From the NCBI GenBank assembly GCA_964188305.1, contig OZ076886.1: 64,000 nucleotides of DNA; one strand, written 5' to 3'. The translations under genes were made by a program, and so were the position numbers. The stretch is from Podarcis bocagei. Taxonomy: Eukaryota. The notes beneath the pieces were generated by a model. The model saw only the letters and a program-made list of their open reading frames with translations. It ran no database searches and was not told where the DNA came from. Positions 1 through 51,069 of this stretch are shown one piece after another; positions within the stretch are counted from its first letter, which is position 1; every line of letters begins with the position of its first letter.

Positions 1-440
1 AACCAACCTGCCACGAGTGCTTGGCTCATCTGCTGCATTCTGGAGCAGATCTGAACAAAACTGAATTATTAATGCCTCTTAAATGTGCTATACACATTCC
101 TTCCGTCCTCTGCAATAGTCTAAAAACCAGCTCTGCATCTCAACCACATCACGAAACTAGTAAGCTTTATGGCAAAAGTTTAGACCTGCCTTTATTAAAT
201 GAATCTGTGCAGCATCTAATTAACCCACAAAATAGCTCTGCCTCAGTAAAAACAGCAGGCACGCCTATGAAAACCCCATGTTCAGAATTTATCTCTGAAC
301 AAGCCAGCAAGGCAGAATGTACCCAGTGTTGCCACAAGCTTGGTCCAGATCAGACTTCAGTGATGCAGAATGACTACCTGACTCAAGGCCTACCAAACAT
401 TGGGAGAAGCCTAGCTTGTAAAAAAGATGCCAGAGCTGTG
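1..440 (+). CDS. WNK2: Candidate large cassette exon of WNK2 (3' part only), at the position equivalent to the WNK1 HSN2 exon
   Basis: Frame is open from base 3 to a stop at 471-473. Donor GTG|GTAGGT at 440/441 is phase 0 and matches the phase-0 acceptor at 3645. Confidence 0.55.
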
Positions 441-2223
441 GTAGGTGGAATGCCTCATTGCTTCCTCACTTGACTTAGAAGACTGAACAATTCCAAGAAT
501 GATACTGAATGCATCCTCTTTGACCCGGAATGACTTTCAATCAGTTAGAAAAGTCATGCTTGCCCTACTTTTCCCTTTTCTCTCTCCAAAATGCCTGTAA
601 TAAAACCTAAGGTGTACTTAGTTTGTATGGTCCCATGAATTCCATGACAGCATCGCTTTCTTAACCCGGGGGAGGGGAATAGCTTTGGTGATTGTACCAG
701 CCTTCCTTTGTTGTTGCAACGGTTCCTCAGATAAATGTACTACCTGCCTTGTAAGTTTTAATCTTATCTTGCTGCTTTATTATATAAAGCAAAAGGCCTG
801 CAACTTTGTGCAATTGCAAAATTCAACAATGTAGCTGGGTGCCTCAGTGCCCACCCAACATTTGATTTTCAGTTGTGAAGTATGGATGTGACACTCCTGA
901 TAGCTTTAAAAAGTAAAATACTTTTAACTTGACATTTGTGAGAAACATTGGTTATTGCTTTTTTATCTAAATGGAAACTCTTAAAAAGTAAAATACTTTT
1001 TCATAAAGATGCACTTTGCTTAATTTTAGTCATCACAACAATTATTTATATTTGATCAGTTGTGTTTCATTTTTTTCCTTCAACACCGTTTACATCAGAG
1101 TAAGACTTCAAATAGATGACATTATGTTTTAATGAGGTATTTTTGACATATAACATATTCCTATTAATCACTTACAAAGAAAAGTGCCAGAAGTCATCCT
1201 TTGTAATATGGCTTTTAACTCATCAAGTTTTCATTCAGCATCCAGCCACATACATTCTGATGTTTTGTAGAGGGTTCCTGCCTTTCTGTAAAAAAATAAC
1301 AATGCTATTTAATTTTTTTTAACAAGCCATTATTTGTTTTTGGCTAGCCATTTTTATTTCTGAAAAAAGCTGCTCTTTATCGACTCGTAGACTACCTAGT
1401 GCTAACATGGCTGTTTTTTATTCATTCATAAAAATATAAAGCAACTCACATATGTAGTAACTTCTCCCTTCCCTAATGTGTTACAGCATGCTTTTAGTTG
1501 CAAATCCCCTCTTCCCCCAAAGTTTATCAGCTGTTTTTAATCACTTGCCTGCCTTTCATGAAAATGTAAAGTGTGCTTTATGTGTTTCAATTCTGTTTTC
1601 TTTAAAGTCATTTTTGTTTATGCATTTTTCATGGTTGCGTAAGCTGTTCAGGTAGTGGAGTCTAGTGAATAAACAAGACTTCTCTATGGCCTTAGTGCCC
1701 AACCACTGAAGTTACAGTCGGGGTAGGAAATATGCTGTGGGCAGGCATCAGCTTATGGGGCTATTCATTTATTACTTTTCAGTGCCCTGGAGAGAATGAA
1801 TGGAATGATTTCCCCTCACCACAACCAGTCCACACTCTGCCATACATTTTGGGAATAGTGAAAATGTTCTCAGAAAGGGTTGAGTCTTTGACACCTCTCC
1901 TTTTAAAAACTAAACATTATTCTGTAATCTGACTGGTGCGTGGATGCCCTAGTGTGCCTGCTCTCTGCTTTATCACCTTCTCCCCCGCCCTCCCATAACA
2001 TCTTAGAGTCCAACTAGATGGGATGCAAGAGAGCCATGATGGGATGCTCCAGCATTTCCTTTAAAAAACAAAAACCACCACCCACAAAAGGAAGATAGTT
2101 GAAAAGTAGGCTGTATGTTTAGACATCATGTAGGGGGGAAATATTAGCTTTTGCAGGGAGGGGAATTTTGGCATATGTGAAGTTAATCTCCCTTACCCTT
2201 GTAACTGGTCCTGCTCAAATAGT

Positions 2224-3644: not shown

Positions 3645-3797
3645 CCTGGACTTCCAGTGGTTCAGGCTCCACCTGCTGTTGTCTCTCAGCGACCACAACA
3701 TTATCAAGAACCAGCAATCCCATTCCCTCTCGTCCATCCCACCTCCGTTGCCCCTGTCCAGATGAGACAATCACAGCCTGTGTTAGCCAGCCAGCAG
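3645..3797 (+). CDS. WNK2: WNK2 exon (PGLPVVQAPP...VLASQQ), 153 nt, phase 0-0
   Basis: Pyrimidine tract + CAG acceptor; CAG|GTAAGT donor; resembles human PGLPVGSVPA...PPGQQ. Confidence 0.9.
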
Positions 3798-4551: not shown

Positions 4552-4743
4552 CAGTCCATCCCACCTCCAGCTCCTCTACAGCATGTTCTAGCCAACCAGC
4601 CCATTTGCCCAGTGCAACAACCTGCACCTCACCTATTGCCCCAGTATCAAACTCCCAGTTCTCAGGTGGCAGCTAGCAATGCATCTCTCGCACCTCTGCA
4701 GATTCCCCCTGTGCAGCAACTTCCAACAGTCCCACCTGGCCAG
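4552..4743 (+). CDS. WNK2: WNK2 exon (QSIPPPAPLQHVLANQP...PPGQ), 192 nt, phase 0-0, NAGNAG acceptor (4552 or 4555)
   Basis: ctctctacCAG|CAG acceptor; CAG|GTAAGC donor; Pro/Gln-rich translation colinear with human. Confidence 0.9.
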
Positions 4744-6779: not shown

Positions 6780-9372
6780 GCTCACATATTTTGAAAGCAT
6801 TTACATTTTCATATATTTTTTCTTGAATCTAAAAAATTGTGTGGGTATATCTTTCTATAACACAATTTTTATTTTTTTTCAGTATCTCTGCAAAATATTT
6901 TTGAACAGTTACACCAGTTGTTATGTCCATTTATTTTGCTGGTGCAACAAACTTTTTAAATTTTGAGCATTTAGTGTAATTGCTCCACCAGTATTTGTGA
7001 AGGAAACTTTCTGCTTCAGGACAGTGGTTGTGTACAATATATTGCACACAAATACTAGCTTTTCAGCTTCCTGTCATCATCCCCTTGCTTTCTTCAAAAG
7101 CCAGTGTAAGGTTGGGTGACTCTTGAGAGCAGCATTCCATGACACACAAAGGGTGCACAAGAAGGAAAAGATTGACAAATCTATGTCCACAAAGAAGCAC
7201 TTGGAGCACTGTGCATACTGCATATGCATTCTCGCGTGCGCAAACACACAGACAAGTCCTTGTGATCTCAGTCCACCAGAAAGAATGTGATTGTCTGTAC
7301 TGGTGAGTGTGGATAAAGAGGTGGTAAATAAAATGTTTAGGTCAGTAGTAGTAGGACTGGCAATATCAAGCCACTCACCATATTTTTAAAACTAAAAGAA
7401 TGAGAAAAGTAAAAATGCAGAACACAGTGAGGCAGACACATTGCTCAGACAATATTTTCAGGAGTCCCTTCACACTCTGATTCCCTCGTTTTTTTTCACA
7501 AAGTGGGAAATTTCAGCTGCTCTTAAAGCCCACATCAAATTAAAATTAGGATTCCAGGAAATTGGTTCTTTCCCCCTAAATGCTTAGCTTAATATATAAG
7601 AATGGACATATAATTGAGGGGTAGAGAGAGAAGAAGAGAGTGGTTTTGTTCCTTACTCAAAGGAAAATGGCTCACATATCTTCTGGATTTCTGCTCAGAT
7701 TCCCTCCTGCCTTTTTTCCACTTGAGGAGATACGGTACTTGTCCTGCTCTTTTTCAGAAACTGAGTTGCTTGTAGCTTGGCCTGTATCCCATAGCCAAAT
7801 TAAATTCTCCTGCTACCAGTCGAGGCCTCGTCAGATAGTACATATACAATTAGAAAGTTTGTGCTCACCAACGCTAATTGCTTTCAGAGTTCTGGTGTTT
7901 ACCCGCATGGATTGGCTGTTCAGAATAGAGAAGAGAAAGATTATCAAAGGAAGATAAGAGTGGGCAGTAAATAGCTTCATCTCTGTCAAGTGCTGAATCC
8001 TAGAGCATTCAACATGGAAGCAAACATGGGAGTAGAAATGCATTTTATACCTAGATACAACTGTTAGTCACCATAAGTGATGAAAGAAGTGCAATTTGTA
8101 TCCTTGTATAATCAATTTTAACATTTCCAAAATTTTACACAACCAAGCGATCGTGCCTTTATCCGATAATGCAAACAACTTTAAAACATACATGTATTTT
8201 TTTTTAAAAGTACCCCAGTATCTTTAGAACACAAGCTAGTGTGCAATAATATTTAAATGTGCATTAAATGAGGGAAGCAGGAGCTTCCAAAAATGGTTTA
8301 GTGCTGAAAATTCAAATGCATGTCAGTTTGCATCCCTGTAACTCCAAGGATTAATATCTTCAGTAGACGCTATCCTGTGATACATATATGCATTAAATGA
8401 GGTTTTTTGTTGTTTAATGCTGAACACTTTTGTGCATATCTGCTTGTAATGATTAGGATTAATCATATGTATATAGTTATTACCCAGTTTTTAAAAAATT
8501 ATAATAAATGTATAAAATATAGTAACTTGAATGGCATGCATTGGAGGCTTATTATGCAAGTTAAGTGTTTCTCAAACTATATGTAATTGCGTCCCAGCTT
8601 CTAATTGTGTTCAGTCTAACATGCTTTGCCCATCCTGAACTTCCTTAAGGATGCTTTCCCAGCTCTTATATCCCCTGCATTGCTTCTACCCACACAAACT
8701 GCAGTATTCTATCTCCCCATCCTTTGCATACCTGGTTTCCCCCCACCACATCGTCTCCAGTTGGAACAAAAGAACCTACAGCAGTTGGGACCTTTCAACA
8801 CCCCCATCTTCCTTATCAAGGATTCTAGTGGATTTCCAATCCTCACTTTGGAAAATGCTGAATTTTAACATTCTACCAATACAACATGCAAACCCTTGCA
8901 CAGACTTCTAGTTTGAGAAACACTGCAAAAATTAAGCTGCATGCAGAAGAAAATAAGTTTGCCCTGACTTGGCTGTAACTTTGCAGTGACTTGCAGCAAC
9001 TTCAATATGGGCAGAATCAGGGGTGGTGTTTCCTTCTTCACTGCTTGAGGCAAAACTGGAAGTGCCGTCCTGCTGGCAGAAAAGCACCACCGCCACCAAC
9101 CCTGATTTCAGGCAAGATCACCAATTTTTAGTGAGGTATTGCCCAAAATGGATGTGATCTTGCCTGAAATTGGCGCTGATGGTGATGGTGCTTCTCCACT
9201 GCTGGGGGAGGTGGTGGGGCCTCCCCCTGCCTAATACCTGGGCTGGCTCGGGTCAGGAAATTCTCCCTTCACTTCAAGTTACAAGAGTCTCTCTGCATAG
9301 CATGGCACTCCGCTGAACTGAACAAGAAAGCCTGTTCAAAATAGGAGCTCCATGTATACTGTATGTATAGTA

Positions 9373-9502
9373 NNNNNNNNNNNNNNNNNNNNNNNNNNNN
9401 NNNNNNNNNNNNNNNNNNNNNNNNNNNNNNNNNNNNNNNNNNNNNNNNNNNNNNNNNNNNNNNNNNNNNNNNNNNNNNNNNNNNNNNNNNNNNNNNNNNN
9501 NN
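9373..9502. other. Assembly gap (130 N)
   Basis: Run of N. Confidence 1.
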
Positions 9503-9845
9503 AACTCTGAATCAGGGCTGTGGTATTTAGAACCTGTGTGTGGGAGATGTGCAAAACACCTGCCCAAAGGTGTTTCTAGTGCAGGTACATAGAACGAGCA
9601 ATTATTAATAGATTGCTGCATGATTAATAAGTTTCCTTTGCAATAATTTTGAACTGCTCAGATTAACACGCAGTTGCTTTCAAGTCTTCTTCTCTGTTTG
9701 TTCTAAAATCAATCTTGCTTGCTCTCTGCGTAGACCCAAGAAAATGGGCGGAAATCACTATTCATCGTACTTATCATATTAGTAAGGCAAATGTGCCAGC
9801 CTGGAACGCTCTTTGCAATTCACGTAATATTATATTTTTTTTCAG

Positions 9846-16259: not shown

Positions 16260-16376
16260 GTATGCAACACAGGGGATAAGATGGTGGAATGCCAGCTAGA
16301 AACACACAATCACAAAATGGTTACATTTAAGTTTGATTTAGATGGCGATGCACCAGAAGAAATTGCTACTTACATG
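16260..16376 (+). CDS. WNK2: WNK2 exon, CCT-like domain ([39 protein letters not shown]), 117 nt
   Basis: Near-identical to human WNK2; TAG acceptor; ATG|GTAAGA donor. Not in the ORF track because it is too short. Confidence 0.97.
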
Positions 16377-17471
16377 GTAAGATCTTTCTTTAGATTCATT
16401 AGCTGAATTGATGCCACCGCCTTCTTAGCACAGCCACAGAAAAGTATTTCTGATCGTTCAGAAGGGAGCTATTGAGGTGCAGCCTGATTTCTGTTTAGCA
16501 TCCCATTTCTGGATGTGTGTTTGGTGCCCAGTATGGTGCTGATAGACACCCTGGCACCCATGGAAACCACATGCCAAGGCTCCCTACCCCTCCTATTTTT
16601 AATTATTTTTAACTTCTTCTTCTTTAAACCTTCTGAGTTGGCTGGGATCACGTCAAAGCAAAGGGCTGGCCTCTTCAAATTGACCCTGGGACCCATATGG
16701 ACCCAGAGGAGTTCTTAGGAAGTGACTATGGCTGATGGTTGCAAGCTGATGCTTTGCTCTGCAGTGTGCTCATCCTCCCAGAAGAAGAATAAAAGAAAAA
16801 GGGGTCTCTTTGTTGATGCCTGGTAAGCAGGAAGGGGAAGCTAGACTTAGACTATACACACAGGCTAATAGTAAGAGGGGATGTTATCTTACCTCCCAAT
16901 GAGTGACCCACTTTTGCACTCTTCTCCTTACTGTTTGGGAAGTCAGTGTGCCGTGTGGGATGAGAGGTGCTACTCTGGCCTTCATACATGCTAGTCACAA
17001 TTTATTATTGTTGCATATGTGCAACAGATGCTTCAGGTGTTCATGAATACTGCTGCTAATTTGGCTCAGAGATATTCAGTATGCTATCCTTAATTGCTCT
17101 GGCATAAGCAGGGCAAGTTGAAAGTTCCCAGTGACCCATCAACTAGTCCTTGAAGCTTGTGCATATTTTGAAATGCCTCTCATGCGCTAATGCATTCATT
17201 TACTGCTTAATCAAGATAGGTCAGTTACATAAGAGCAATGAATAATTTCTGTAGCTTTGCTCAGCTCTGTTGGCCAGGGAAAAGATTCGTTCATTTCAAA
17301 TGTAAAGCGTCATACACACTCAGTTCCATATATGTGGAACTTCTTTCCACTGCATGCTATTTTTAAAAGATTTACATTGGCCATACAGTTACTTCTTGTT
17401 ATGAAGTTACTACAGAGCGAACACTAAAGAGAATGCAGTTTTAAAATATATATATCTGTGTATCCCTATAG

Positions 17472-19310: not shown

Positions 19311-20252
19311 GTACTTGAGAACTTTAAAGATTTAAGAACAAATCATAGAATTCCTATATGTTCCTGTCCTTCCAGGCACTTACACAAAAATCATAGCATA
19401 AGAGAAAACTCGCTACCTTTTAAAACCTCATTTACTATTTTTCAAAAAGGAAACACATGGGAAAGTGAAAAGATATAGCAGGAAAGCATTTAAAACTAAC
19501 TACGTGGCCAATAAAAATATATTTGGAGTTATTTAAGATACCATCTTCAGGATTTTCATTTCTTTTGTCACCAGGGTTTGATGGGCCACAATCAATAATG
19601 CAGAGGCAGTTGCACGCAGAAGCCATCCACAAATGTGTGGGTCCCATAGCTTTAAAGTAGCAATTAGCTTTCCCCGGAAAAGGCATTTATTTCAATCATT
19701 CATTACTCAAGAGAATTGGAATAGCCAAGGGCAAGCAGAACAAGTTAGAGGCAAATTAGTGTCAAAACCTTGCTACAAAAGAGTACGCATTTATGAACAT
19801 TGAACTTGATCCTTTTTGTTTTACATGCGTAGATGTAATTGAAGTTCCTGTCACATAAATGAATTTTAAAGACTCTGTAATGTATGCACCACCTTGTTAT
19901 TAATCTCAATTTTCCAGTTGGTTGAAATGGGGCAGTGCATCATTACTACTAATAGCCAATAAGGGGCAATACATCTTGCATTAGAAAAATTGCTATATAT
20001 AGCTGTTATAGTAAGCGGGAGTAGCCTGTCGTTATGATCACGTTTTAGCTGTAGATGTAAAACAAAATGTACACAATATTCTTGTTTACATACAGAAAAT
20101 CATCTGTTTTAAAACTGCTTTAAGACAAGGAGAGCACGTCAGCTGTTTAAAGCATTTTATCATTCTGCTCTTACATTTCTGGTCATATGTTTGAGGCTAC
20201 AAACGGAAGTGCCATTCTCTGAACTCAGGGCTTCCTTTTCTGTTATTTACAG

Positions 20253-21417
20253 ATGTAGAACAGTCAGATGATCAGCAGCAGAGCTCTACAGCAACAGACA
20301 AGCCCACAAACACAGCCCATCAGCAGCTTTCAAGTCAAAGGAGTGCCACGGACAGCCCCAAAGCAACTCCTGCTCCTGCTCCTCTGACACAAGTCTCCAC
20401 TGCAGAACCAACCTCCCTTCCACAGGTCCAGCCAGAAACATCCACTGCAACACCCCCAGTGACGGCTCCATGTGCTCCAGAACAGGTTGCTGACAACACA
20501 GGCCAACTGGAGTACCCTCCGCAACAACAGCCTGTTGCATCCAGTCAGCCTAGTACACCTGCTGCCCCCAGTGCACCTTCACTCGAAGAACGTCCTGAGG
20601 CTCAGCTTCCTCTAAATCCCCCATTGCAGGCACTCCAACGAATAGATGAAAACCCTTGTGTCCCTGAGACAGAGGCTGAACAGGGCACTGCTGGGAGGCC
20701 AGAGCCGATCCAGACTGTTCCTGCACAGGCAGCAGAAGCCCGCCCACTCCCTGCTGTCTCTGATGCGACTATTTTGGAACACCAGCCTCCAACACAAATC
20801 CTCAGCTTGCCAGACAGCAGTCAGCCTAGTCAGATGCCTTCTTCTTTTGCAAGCCAGGCAGCTCCTGTGTCTGCTGTTCCTGATCCTCTGATTCTAGCAG
20901 CACCTCAGCTTTCAAGTCCCCCTCACTCATCAGCAGCTACATCCCAGTTACAAGCCCAGTCCCAGCCCACGTCATCCACTGGCCTTGCAGTTAGCGCTCC
21001 TCAGCCGCCTTGTGCTGTAGAATCAGACGGTGAAGGGCCACCAAGAGTTGATTTTGCTGACAACACAATAAAGAGTCTGGATGAGAAGCTGCGCAACTTG
21101 CTCTACCAGGAGTATGTCCCGACATCTTCTGCATCTGCAGCAACACCGGACAGCTTTGTACCTATAGACCAAGGAGATGGTGAATTTAACTTGGCACCTT
21201 TGCCTGCGCTTGTGTTGGACCTGAAAGTTCCTGTAGCTGGCATGGATGTTAAGTCAGCTGAGGATCAACCTGAACTCACCACGTCTCCTGTTCCGGCAAG
21301 TCAACCTGTGGCTGTGGTGCCTGTGGTACCACTGACACAGAAATCATGCAAACCTCTGCTAAGAGTGCTGCAGTTTATGGGCTTTGTAAACCAGAATTCA
21401 GAAACGAAGAGCCGATG
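20253..21417 (+). CDS. WNK2: WNK2 large exon (DVEQSDD...[31 protein letters not shown]...); 3' boundary uncertain
   Basis: CAG acceptor in phase 1; continuous Pro/Ser/Gln-rich ORF. The candidate donor ATG|GTAGCC at 21417/21418 has a phase conflict (see findings). Confidence 0.85.
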
Positions 21418-22231
21418 GTAGCCTTTTTCAAACTATTGCACTTGTTATGCTGTGTGGTCTGCTTCACAAAGCAAATACATGGTTCTCAGTTATTGGTGCA
21501 AATTTTAAAAATATTCTTTCTTTGTGGTGTACAATACATGCCTTCATCAAACATTGCAAACTCACTGTCATTATCCTTAAGAGACAAAAACCAAACTTGT
21601 CATTTGAGAGGGGTGCATTATGTTTCAGGGTATTTGAGGTCTAACTACCAAGATAGTACAAAGTCCTCTTAATTATTATTTTTTTTAAGTAAACTTTACT
21701 TCCTCCTCCACTCAAAAGTTCTATGCACAGAGAGAAAAATCTGGTGCCCATGATCAAAATAAATTCTAATGTGTTGTTACCATTGGCCCTGAAAATTTTC
21801 TGAACATTGGTGAAACCAAGCCTTATTTTAAACTTAACATTTTTTTTTCAACTAAGAAATTGCTTATTGGAATATGAGAATGAAAATAAGGTATACTGCA
21901 TTCATAGCCTTATTTCTCTCATTTGGCTGGCTGCTCATTATTTGATGTATAGGATTTTGCCAAAGGTGAGATCAAGGTAGGAATTCTGTGCTCTTCCTTC
22001 CCCCCAAGTCTAATGAAGAAGTCTGCATGTAGATATTGACTCTGCAATATCTTTTGCCCCTTTCTAGTGGGTTCTGTTTCCCAAGGAAGATTTCCTGTTC
22101 TGATAAACACATTTATCAGTACATTTATTAACTTCTTCCTGTAGTGATAGAAATGAGGAGAGGCGTGCACAAATCAGACATCTGCTCCTAATCTTGCCCT
22201 GGGAAGAATTTGGGGCAAAGTAACAAGTGAA

Positions 22232-24572: not shown

Positions 24573-26741
24573 GTAGAGGGGAACATAATCCCCCCCTTTT
24601 TTGCTGTACCAGATCTCTGGCAGCTGGACCCTTAGGATCCAGCAGATTCTTGGCCAGACCAACTCTGCTCCCAGCACGGTGCTGTTTGATCCCCTGTTTC
24701 AGCTATTGCTGGTAGGAACACCATCAGTTGTAGTATTGACTCTGCCATGCTTTCTGCAGCTGTAGCTCAGGCCTCTGCAGAGGCAGAGATCCTACCCCCT
24801 GCCTGCTGATGAAACACCCACTAGCTCCTAATCCCTTAAAGTATCATGGACTGAGGATTAAGATTGCACCTTTATTCTTTCAAATATAATTATGTTTTAA
24901 AAGGAGGCAAGCATTACACAATGTTATTAATTCAGGCCAAAAAAATCATCATTATCATCAACAACAACAACAGCCAGTATCAACCTGTCACAATAGCAAA
25001 GAAAATATTTAAGGAAAAAATCATAGACATCTTTATACAGAATCTGATTGAGATTTCCGGTTGCCAAATTACCTGACCTGTGTACATATATACCTCTGAC
25101 CTTTCTAAGGAGTCTTAATGTGGCCGGAGGTGGCATGTGCAGACTGCATGACCATCTATGATCTGCAAAACTTTCCCAGTATGAACTAGATGCTATAGCG
25201 TAGATGCAAAAGGTGGAGGTTTGAACATATATACCTATTGTGTTCAAAGTCAGTCCACCCTCATATTTTGAAATCTAGAATACTGAAAGTAATTTGTCAT
25301 GGACTGGGAGGAGGTAAAATGTGTAGATGCAGCCTAATCTGCTGAGGAGCTATACGTATTAAACTCACCATGGGCACATCTCCTTCCTTTAGACCTTGCT
25401 TCCATAGGGCGAATGCATGAAAAAGCAAGGACAATTATTGCACATATAATATTGGAATCAAGCCTACAATTCAAGCTTACACATGTTGGATGTTTTTGCA
25501 TGTAAGCTCTAGTGCAAATCAAACACCCACAGATCAGACACTGGGGCTGATCATGTGCTCACTGTGGGTGGGGCAAGCAGCTGTGATCTCATTCCTTTAT
25601 CACATATATTCAATTGCACTGCCCAGGGAGCCCTTTTAAGGACCAAAATATAGGGTATAAAAGGTTTTATAAGGAAAAGGCTTATCAGAGCTGTTAAGCA
25701 TATCCATTGCGTGCAGATAAACATCCAATTCTTTCCATTAAAGCCTTCTTAATCTTTTTCATTCAATTCTGCAGAGAAATGTGGGAATGGCCAGTTCATT
25801 ACACTGAACTTGTGTCTGAATATTCAAAGGTGGGGGGGGGGGGAGAGCTCCTGTTCTTAGCTCTTGCTTGCAGATTTCCCACGGGCATCTAGTTGGTCAC
25901 TTGTGAGAACAGAATGCTGGATCCGATGGGCCAGCAGGCTCTTCTTTATAGTCTTACATCATGAATGTTGGGATGGTTTCAAAACTTGTATCTGCCATCA
26001 TAATTTACATTGTGTTCTATAGACATGAGCTGTAATCTTGCACATTGCTATGACCCATTGACACAGGGATTTCAGCCTTGTGCAGCATCTATGCACGATA
26101 CCATTAAGCTACGTGTGCGTTGTGTGTGCTTTTTAAATAAACATGTCTGCTCATATGTGTGTCCATTTTTGTTTCCAATGCATTAAACAGGACAAGCTGC
26201 AAACATTACTTCCGCTTCTGTTGGCACACCATCAGGACTCCCTCAGGTATTCTGAACTTACAATTTACCTGTGTATTGTTTTCCTTTCTACACTGTCATA
26301 TCATTCTTAAAGCACTTGGTGTTAAAGCACCTGCTTTACATACAGGAAGTCCCAAATTCAATCTCTCCCATATCAAGATAGGGTTGGAAAAGACTCCTGC
26401 TAGATACCCTGAGTTGCTGCCAGTCAGTATACAGAAATTGACAAATGATCTGGCACACCACAAGGCAGCTTTCCGTGTTCTGGTGTAGTAATCAAAACTA
26501 GGGCTGGTGACAGAGGGTTGTCTCCAGTGCTGCACAAGCCACTCACCCTTTCTCTGCACCCACAGATCTGACTCAGAGGGTCCCCAATCATTGAGCAGAT
26601 TTTGAGGGTGTGTGGTAGGCTGGCGGGGGAAGAGGAAAGTGAAGTTCTGTTGCATAAGTGGAAGTCCATTACACAAGTAACAGCAGCATTAGATACAACC
26701 CATGTTCTCCAACTAGACCATGTTCTTGTATGTTACTTCAG

Positions 26742-27358
26742 GTTGCTCAGAAAGATGCTTCTAAGAGGAGTGAAAAGGAAAATACTGCGCCGTTACTTGA
26801 AGAGAAAAGTAAATCTGAAAAGGATGACTCTGTGGACTCAAGCTGTAGTGAGAAACAAGCTGAAACACACGACAGCACACCAGCAAAAACTATTGGCAGA
26901 TTTTCAGTGGTCAGTACACAGGATGAGTTAACTTTACCACCTGTGCATTCCTTGAGATACTCTGCACCACCAGATGTTTATCTAGATGATCAACCTTCTA
27001 GCCCTGATATGAAGACTTCTTTGCGGCGTGTGCAGACAGCATCCTCTATCGATGTACTTTGTGGTCAGGATTCTAGTGATTCTGGCGATGAATCTCTTCA
27101 AAGGAAACCATCTGCAGCTCCACCATCACCACAGAGCAGTAGTGCAGGAAATGACTACGTGAAAAAGACCTCATCTTTTCTGCAAAAGTCTGGAAAGTCC
27201 AGTTCACAAGGCCTTGATTCTCCTAACGGTCATGGATCAAAAATCCCAACCATCAACATAACTTCTTTCCATTCACAATCGTCATATGTGAGCAGTGACA
27301 ATGACTCGGAGTTTGAAGATGCAGACATGAAGAAAGAATTGCAGCACCTGAGGGAAAA
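26742..27358 (+). CDS. WNK2: WNK2 exon (VAQKD...PAKTIGRFSVVSTQDE...SSDNDSEFEDADMKKELQHLRE), phase 0-2; contains RFxV SPAK/OSR1-binding motif
   Basis: CAG acceptor; AAA|GTATGT donor; highly conserved motifs. Confidence 0.95.
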
Positions 27359-27579
27359 GTATGTTTCATTTCCATCAGAATGTCTGGTGTCATTTTGTGC
27401 GTTTGTGATATTTTTACAGCATTTAATCCGTTTCTGTTTCTTTCCTGCGCGTTTATTACAAGTTGGAGTCGCTTGATATTCCAAGTAAATCAACTTCCTT
27501 CCTTTGGCCTAGTTCTCCTGAGCTGGCAGTCAAGTATCTGGACGGCATCACGTAAGGTTAAAGGTGAAGGACTGAGGTT

Positions 27580-27830: not shown

Positions 27831-29189
27831 TCAGTTGGAGCAGCTTATTCCCCTTCTCTTTATTTTATAGGTGTTTTCCATTGTTGAAGATAGAATTGTT
27901 ATATGAACCTCACACTTAGTCTGAAGTGGTAGAGTCCCAACACAGTAAGAACTAGGCCTATATCAGAACATCTGAGAAGCAACAAGGTCATCATGATCCA
28001 TGACACTTGTGGATGTTAGCTTAATATAAAGTAAACACAGTTTTTCTTTCCATTAACAGGACACGTCTACCAGCCCCCCCCACATGCCCCTAAAACTGTT
28101 CCTCCTTCTCTCACTATTCTGTTGCCCTCATCTAATTTCATGTGAAGCTTTGATCCTGTCCTCTTCTAAAACCACATAGCCATCTTCTTTGTCATTTCTC
28201 CTCCTTTCCATCCCAGTATCAGCCTACGCCTTTCATCTAACTCCTCCCCTTCTGTATTCATATATGCCACTGTTCACCCTATTTCTTATCCCAGTCTCCC
28301 TCTCCAATTTCTCTTCTGGCCTTTAACTCCTCCTTTTTGCGTATTTCAGCTTCCTTCTTACTTTGTTTCCTCCAACTCTGCTGTTGATCACATTACATTA
28401 CATTTATTTAATTACTTAATTTCTACACCACCCTTTCTCCCAACGGTGGCCACCTTCAGCATTTCACTAATGCTCCTTTCACCCAAATCACCAGTAATTT
28501 ACTTGTGGAGGAAGGGAGGATGCTCAGGAAAGCTTTGCACACCTATTTCTTGTCCAACAGCTGCCCAACAGCCCTGCAGTGCTGCCAGCTGGGTTTTACT
28601 ATTCTGTTGTTGCTACCAGTACTACCCTGTTTTGGTCGCCTACAGCCACAGAAAAGGAGGAGCAACCAGGACTATTCAATTAGTTGTTCAATCCTGGCAT
28701 CCTGGACCAGTGCACCTCCAGCTAATCCACCGCTATTTCTTACCATGACTACTGCAACCTTCTCCTGTTTGGTTTTCCATTTTCTTAACTTGGTCCCCTC
28801 ACCTCTATTCCACACTCTTTCAAAATAATTCACCCTTTTCATTGCTCTTCTCATGTGTCATTCCTTTTTAAAGCTCTGCACTGGCTTCCTGTCTACTCCT
28901 GCATCATGCACAAGCTTTTCAGTATTAACTTTTAATAGCCTTCGTGGTCATGCCTCCTTTTCTTTTCCTACACAGGATTTTGTGTGTGTGTCTGAGGTGG
29001 TATCATATGACTGGTTTTCTATTGAAATATTTGCTTAACTCAGAGTTTGGGATATATCTCATGCAGTGTGCATGAAAAAGACTGCCTGTGATCCTAATGT
29101 GGATACTATGTACAAATTATATATTAGGCATATGCTCTCTCGGTGGGTGGGTGGGTGGGTGTTTTACGCACACGCACGCACACACATGC

Positions 29190-50718: not shown

Positions 50719-51069
50719 GTTAATTCAGTCAGAACAGGAGTGGGGGAAAAGACAATTGTTCCAGTCTCTTGCCCAGTGCCAGCTGCATTAACTCCTGGAG
50801 TTTCACCATCCCTGCCAGTGCCTATGCCAGGTACTACCCTTTCTGGCACAGTAAAACCTTATGTGATGCCTCTTTGTCAATATGGAGGAGTTTTTCCTAC
50901 ATCCGTTTTTGGAGTGCAGTGGTTGGGCCCAGCCACACAGCCTGGGATTGTAGGAGGCCAGAGCGTTGCTCCATTCCCACCTCTGGGCAAAAACGGCTTG
51001 CAGCTGTTTCCAGTGCCGCTGCAGCAACCTGTGGTCAGCCCGCCAGGCTCTAACATGAGAATAACTTAG
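50719..51069 (+). CDS. WNK2: WNK2 proximal terminal coding exon (VNSVRTGVG...SPPGSNMRIT-stop), with internal alternative donor at 50830
   Basis: tttttgTAG acceptor in phase 0; ORF to TAG at 51067-51069; ends like human WNK1 (SNPPGSNLRTT). Confidence 0.9.
   Translation, partial: VNSVRTGVGEKTIVPVSCPVPAALTPGVSPSLPVPMPGTTLSGTVKPYVMPLCQYGGVFPTSVFGVQWLGPATQPGIVGGQSVAPFPPLGKNGLQLFPVPLQQPVVSPPGSNMRIT

Follow-up and report, generated by a model that had tools for sequence, protein, structure and literature searches.

The left edge of the lizard window, by which we mean the whole 64,000-nucleotide stretch analysed here, cuts through an open reading frame that had been read as a large exon of the kinase gene WNK2, placed like the HSN2 exon of WNK1. 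The locus thus raises two questions: whether this frame is an exon at all and, if so, whether it is HSN2-like in anything but position. On the plus strand the frame is free of stops from position 3 to 440 (146 codons) and extends leftwards beyond the window. It remains open to position 470, with a TGA at 471–473, and the junction GCTGTG/GTAGGT at 440/441 forms a phase-0 donor. Reading the window confirmed what the initial annotation had stated here: a stop-free frame of at least 146 codons ending at GTG/GTAGGT, and a donor compatible with the exon at 3645, which is likewise phase 0.

1–440, plus strand: last 146 codons of the candidate large cassette coding exon of WNK2, as judged from the stop-free frame, the orthologues and dN/dS

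In frame +1 the edge stretch contains no stops; each of the remaining five frames has 6–12, and its composition would predict 7.8. The length of the frame alone proves little, because the window contains seven stop-free runs of at least 150 codons, of which only three are obvious exons. Its coding status was settled by comparison with other species, in which the orthologous frames are open. Of about 338 codons, the last 146 fall within the window and the first ~190 to its left; the lizard exon is therefore seen only over this part, and a break further upstream in the lizard is possible.

The gene itself was identified from its other exons:

3645–3797, plus strand: next WNK2 exon, PGLPVVQAPP...LASQQ, 51 codons, phase 0 at both ends, acceptor ending in cccttcag, donor CAG/gtaagt
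4552–4743, plus strand: following Pro/Gln-rich WNK2 exon, 64 codons, splice sites read in the window
16260–16379, plus strand: exon of the second CCT-like domain, an anchor in the WNK family through its match to WNK1 chain 5g3q_A
20195–21418, plus strand: large constitutive exon, a 408-codon frame used for naming the gene, with WNK2 as best named matches

The exon at 16260–16379 shares 33 of 40 residues (82%, E = 1e-17) with the WNK1 CCT-like 2 domain 5g3q_A. Because this identity is too low for an orthologue, the gene is not the WNK1 orthologue. The best named matches of the exon at 20195–21418 are "WNK2-like, partial" proteins of the birds Chlamydotis and Merops (P0052 and P0053) and WNK2 of the fish Sparus (P0091). 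As these proteins also match further downstream exons of the window, such as KTIGRFSV(V/I)STQDELTL, the homology identifies the gene as WNK2. None of the named WNK2 proteins found contains the peptide of the large exon, P0052 and P0053 covering the C-terminal part only. An ORF at 50740–51069 (plus strand), ending in ...PPGSNMRIT and a stop, resembles the C-terminal tail of WNK1 and is probably a terminal WNK2 exon; the strand opposite to it is likewise open, over 161 codons. We also noted a stop-free run of 192 codons at 28170–28745 (plus strand), which lies just after the large exon 26658–27473 and lacks obvious exon character, and a total of 130 N in the window, with an N stretch in 9274–9621.

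An exhaustive phmmer search with the 146-residue peptide against 1.84 billion representative sequences, one per 50% cluster, returned five true matches (E from 6e-34 to 8e-5), all of them unnamed ORFs in assemblies of public sequencing runs. In the four longer matches ...DVVG is terminal or followed by a few more residues, while the fifth, P0006, is a decayed copy that stops earlier. One candidate, the Bacillus Ig-like protein P0003 (3527 aa, E = 3e-12 over seven stretches), was set aside because its match to the Ser/Thr-rich part is compositional. A profile built from the matches added seven further unnamed ORFs and no named protein in the range of 186–591 aa; this search was limited to candidates sharing words with the query and does not exclude distant kinship. 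A word-index search with the 146 residues, for which proteins of 80–255 aa were eligible, gave no match, nor did scanning the exon peptide and the orthologous peptides against Pfam and NCBIfam, and ESM Atlas feature searches gave none above 0.84. Among the 1.84 billion representatives, again one per 50% cluster, there was no spliced ORF joining the exon to its neighbours, and among the phmmer and profile matches we recognised no fish or amphibian copy. In a library of one representative per 50% cluster, and with a word search limited by length, these results are suggestive of an exon found in no named protein.

The matching ORFs lie on seven contigs from public sequencing runs (L001–L007), four of which, from three species, hold the exon complete. 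The contigs, none of which was taken to be human, derive from runs SRR31508491, SRR18112698, SRR33677564/68, ERR14244242, SRR9860178 and SRR13336341. In these copies (L001, L002, L003/L005 and L006) it is open over 327–340 codons (981–1020 nt) and is phase 0 at both ends. The frame opens right after a long pyrimidine tract and a TAG, which doubles as upstream stop and acceptor AG, and it ends at GTG/GTAGGT. The length of the exon is a multiple of three, and its phases fit both neighbours, the upstream exon ending and the downstream exon starting in phase 0. The exon is placed exactly between the ...YQQPSG exon and the PGLPV exon.

441–446, plus strand: 5′ splice site GTAGGT after GTG, phase 0; GTG/GTAGGT is identical in L001, L002, L003, L005, L006 and L007
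L001 91–280, L002 2302–2491, L004 537–726, L006 114–303 and L007 1249–1438: upstream constitutive WNK2 exon (...TFDSGQGSTVYSDSQSSQQSVIYSS...YQQPSG)

L004 has GCGGGT as donor, unlike the other six contigs. The upstream constitutive exon, which reads ...TFDSGQGSTVYSDSQSSQQSVIYSS...LGxYQQPS(G/V/A), ends in phase 0 with a GTAAGT donor 305–393 nt before the large exon in the five contigs listed. The intron on the 5′ side of the large exon is thus unusually short (305–393 nt), and the one on the other side measures ~3.2 kb. At the nucleotide level the upstream exon is 78–91% identical across species, while the peptide of the window exon is 51% identical to that of L001 and 32–39% to those of L002, L003 and L006. 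By these alignments, the large exon evolves much faster than the adjoining constitutive exon.

The complete copies allowed us to weigh the reading that the frame is a chance opening in neutral, noncoding intron sequence. Some features of the locus would agree with it: the window holds other, non-exonic open runs of 150–190 codons, the peptide has no Pfam family match, and, as far as gap-rich alignments can tell, the exon does not clearly exceed the short intron next to it in nucleotide identity. However, the same frame is open over 327–340 codons in three independent species at a dS of 0.4–1.7, and splice signals lie precisely at its two ends. In frame +1 the complete copies on the four contigs contain no stops as compared to 15–19 expected from shuffles and 6–34 in the other frames, and the third codon position is the most variable. 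The dN/dS test that had been proposed for this exon gave values of 0.28–0.58 in all 15 pairs, each significantly below 1 (p = 5e-3 to 2e-16). Pairs that include the window peptide gave 0.29–0.52 (p = 5e-3 to 2e-7), and the window and L001, at 51% amino-acid identity, gave 0.52 (p = 0.005). The conserved open frame, the dN/dS values and the stop counts together refute a chance frame, which we regard as hardly credible, and the substitution pattern identifies the exon as protein-coding and under moderate purifying constraint.

The initial annotation had placed a large WNK2 exon upstream of the PGLPV exon and had ascribed it to reptiles. The first part held, with an exon of ~1 kb that is real, has conserved splice sites and evolves under purifying selection; the restriction to reptiles did not. 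The exon is present in two well-separated contig groups, and on this evidence it is not limited to reptiles; as aligned, the exon and its splice sites are conserved across distant land vertebrates.

A conserved coding frame could also belong to an independent single-exon gene nested in a WNK2 intron, which is how HSN2 was first described. With its end just past the donor, the ORF could be self-contained, and ORF callers indeed gave it as a separate protein. However, no start codon is conserved: the first ATG lies at codon 81 in L001, and there is none near the start in L002. Moreover, the most conserved N-terminal stretch starts at the very first codon after the AG (P-x-I-I-V-P-S-F/L-V-Q-E-P-L-G-S). 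Because conservation peaks at these first codons and no ATG is conserved, the frame appears to be entered by splicing and not by initiation. Together with phases that are frame-compatible with both neighbouring exons, this makes a nested gene very improbable.

At its 3′ end, the frame had prompted a further suggestion, namely an alternative terminal exon. In this case the donor would be read through, translation would stop after 10 codons and polyadenylation would follow the AATAAA at 599–604, leaving a WNK2 truncated after the kinase and the first CCT-like region. Both the read-through peptide VGGMPHCFLT with its stop and the AATAAA are present in the window as described.

441–473, plus strand: read-through tail VGGMPHCFLT and stop, not conserved
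485–510, plus strand: conserved intronic block 1 (GAACAATTCCAAGAATGATACTGAAT), with TCCAAGAATGA common to the window, L001, L002 and L005 and near-identical in L004
585–600, plus strand: conserved intronic block 2 (TCCAAAATGCCTGTAA), with AAAATGC.TG identical in seven sequences (six contigs and the window)
599–604, plus strand: AATAAA, private to the window genome, at the edge of intron block 2

In all contigs conservation extends into the intron for about 200 nt past the donor, and the window and L001 are 82–86% identical at +51 to +200 as compared to 73% within the exon; at the position left open in the block 2 motif, L005 alone has T for C. These ~200 nt could equally be a 3′ UTR. In addition, a stop follows within 2–17 codons past the donor in every species, and in the window the AATAAA lies 128 nt after that stop. 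On the other hand, none of the six other contigs has AATAAA at the corresponding alignment position; they carry AAGGAA (L001), AACAAA (L002), AACAGA (L005), AAGAAA (L006), AAGAAG (L007) and GATAAA (L004). The tail peptide is conserved neither in sequence nor in length, with 2 codons in L003, L005 and L006, 12 in L002, 17 in L001 and 10 in the window, and the GTG/GTAGGT donor, identical in six contigs, points to splice-site use. Because the AATAAA is not conserved and the tail is variable, we consider a terminal exon that truncates the kinase improbable.

We therefore favour the reading, made highly probable by the genomic comparisons, that WNK2 has a large cassette exon which is real, conserved and apparently unannotated. 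Conserved intron next to an exon is typical of regulated alternative exons, and the conservation just after this donor would fit regulated, probably tissue-specific, splicing. Since the exon is flanked by intron on both sides in all of the fetched contigs, these are silent on splicing. The exon is probably included alternatively rather than always. An Rfam scan of window positions 1–1200 gave no match. RNAalifold pairs the GCCUG(C/U) contained in the block at 585–600 with the donor GUAGGU (441–446) through six pairs, two of them G-U, across a loop of ~155 nt (−3.65 kcal/mol) and without any compensatory change; L004 differs on both sides and still forms the pairs. This model gives a weak lead that a complementary, U1-like element might mask the donor.

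Not all species have kept the exon intact. Stops and frameshifts in orthologous sequence, named by the initial annotation as counter-evidence, are absent from the complete copies of three species and present in L004 and L007, which come from two other species. In L004 (1067–2170) the whole orthologous stretch is kept, but it contains 19 stops in the original frame and frame shifts, has lost the motifs and has a GC donor. In L007 (1798–2798) the stretch has two in-frame stops and a length of 1001 nt, not divisible by three. Both copies largely retain the acceptor, the donor region and the intron blocks downstream. Further ORFs are shortened or broken and split (P0004, which stands for a cluster of many members, P0023 with P0028, and P0025). 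Because the exon is decayed in L004 and L007 and shortened or split elsewhere, it is, by this pattern, dispensable in some lineages. If the decayed copies were still spliced in, they would act as stop-carrying exons and introduce a premature stop.

Subsequently, we considered the segment that the exon would encode. An AlphaFold2 model built from nine aligned sequences, of low confidence, is disordered (mean pLDDT 37.7), with three short helices, two of which fall on the CxxCLxxLL and LDLPLLxESLQxII motifs. Conservation concentrates in short motifs: PxIIVPSFVQEPLGS at the start, QRRRSTSxxEAPK, RRHSDSxVAL, CxxC...C...C and LDLPLLxESLQxII. The last two are visible in the window, the first three visible codons of which fall just before the CxxC:

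9–113, plus strand: Cys cluster TCHECLAHLLH...LKCAIH...LC (CxxC, then C, then C), the first part predicted helical (AlphaFold2 helix 196–206)
177–221, plus strand: best-conserved motif of the visible part, SLDLPLLNESVQHLI, predicted short helix (AlphaFold2 258–271)

In the six-row alignment A1, which does not include L006, the invariant columns of the Cys cluster are C198, C201, L202, L205, L231 and C232. The Cys of LKC is absent from this list, and L006 has LG for the last LC. The motif at 177–221 has the invariant columns L257, L260, E262, S263, Q265 and I268. QRRRSTSxxEAPK, RRHSDSxVAL, the Cys cluster and the LDLPLL helix are all lost in the decayed copies L004 and L007. QRRRSTSxxEAPK and RRHSDSxVAL are putative basic RRxS sites, a type of site that basophilic kinases use.

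As both ends are in phase 0, inclusion or skipping of the exon would keep the WNK2 frame. Inclusion would insert a fast-evolving, disordered, Ser/Cys-rich segment between the kinase and first CCT-like region on one side and the Pro/Gln-rich region and second CCT-like domain on the other. This optional segment may act as a docking or regulatory piece, its motifs serving as docking or phosphorylation sites. A neural bias of its inclusion may be proposed solely because of the analogy with HSN2 of WNK1.

To our knowledge, WNK2 is the least studied WNK kinase, and HSN2 of WNK1 is the only comparable large extra exon in the WNK family. HSN2 was overlooked for years and is the site of all mutations causing one human sensory neuropathy (hereditary sensory neuropathy type II). 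In the literature searched, including a 2026 review of WNK kinases, we found no report of a WNK2 exon of this kind. The brain is the main site of WNK2 expression, and the kinase regulates chloride transporters of neurons (PMC3191056). A second HSN2-like exon would define a new WNK2 isoform, relevant to chloride homeostasis and neuronal excitability. Where intact, the exon would represent coding sequence missed in gene models and in variant interpretation, and its repeated decay would serve as a natural experiment to learn under which circumstances the isoform is required.

How far does the likeness to known WNK exons go? The intron between the YQQPSG and PGLPV exons may be equivalent to intron 8 of WNK1. 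Tissue-specific coding cassette exons in the disordered C-terminal half are known from WNK3, which has brain-specific exons, and from exons 26a and 26b of WNK1 (PMC3365125). The WNK2 exon resembles them as a coding cassette exon of a WNK kinase, here read from genomic DNA alone. Unlike 26a and 26b, which measure 72 and 42 nt (PMC3365125), it is ~1 kb long, and both these exons and those of WNK3 lie elsewhere in their genes.

HSN2 is the closer counterpart. Situated in intron 8 of WNK1, it often comes with a small exon, 8b, shows enrichment in dorsal root ganglia and lacks any recognisable motif (PMC3365125). This large in-frame exon is conserved from primates to zebrafish and evolves fast, with 38% identity between chimp and zebrafish, and its neighbour 8b is decayed in humans, where it carries frameshifts (PMC3536653). 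The WNK2 exon is likewise large and in frame and likewise lies between the part with the kinase and the first CCT-like region and the second CCT-like domain. Its ORF also overruns the donor by a few codons (2–17), and the encoded sequence is similarly disordered, domain-free and fast-evolving (PMC3365125, PMC3536653). Decay in particular lineages is also common to both genes, affecting the neighbour exon 8b in human WNK1 and the large exon itself in WNK2, in L004 and L007 (PMC3365125, PMC3536653). In contrast to HSN2, the exon belongs to a different gene, has no detectable sequence similarity to it and shows no 8b-like companion in its upstream intron of 305–393 nt. The initial annotation had seen no direct similarity to HSN2 in the visible part, and neither phmmer (146 residues, 1.84 billion representatives) nor the profile search (186–591 aa) found a match to HSN2 or WNK1. 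The WNK2 exon is thus, as compared here, HSN2-like in layout, size class, overrun, disorder and decay, and not in sequence.

Such a likeness could reflect true paralogy, with a large alternative exon of an ancestral vertebrate WNK gene inherited by both WNK1, as HSN2, and WNK2. This would be a stronger version of the WNK2 exon explanation, not an alternative to the exon being real. The general layout, with both exons between the kinase region and the second CCT-like domain, would fit common descent, as would the similar size, lack of motif and fast evolution of HSN2, and the decay of 8b recalls that of the WNK2 exon (PMC3365125, PMC3536653). Moreover, a disordered segment that is only 32–51% identical among land vertebrates is not expected to have kept detectable similarity since ancient duplications. 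Nevertheless, phmmer and the profile search gave no match to WNK1 or HSN2 and Pfam nothing at all, no fish or amphibian copy was recognised among the matches, and the equivalence of the introns is presumptive. By analogy, common ancestry with HSN2 is possible although doubtful. More speculative, and on the whole rather unlikely, is the full proposal that the ~340-residue WNK2 segment is an ancient sister of HSN2 that predates the vertebrate gene duplications and is spliced in chiefly in neurons, controlled by the conserved intron blocks. If this were true, WNK2 would be a second WNK kinase with a hidden nervous-system isoform, equipped with its own RRxS and Cys-rich docking motifs and, in some lineages, lost again.
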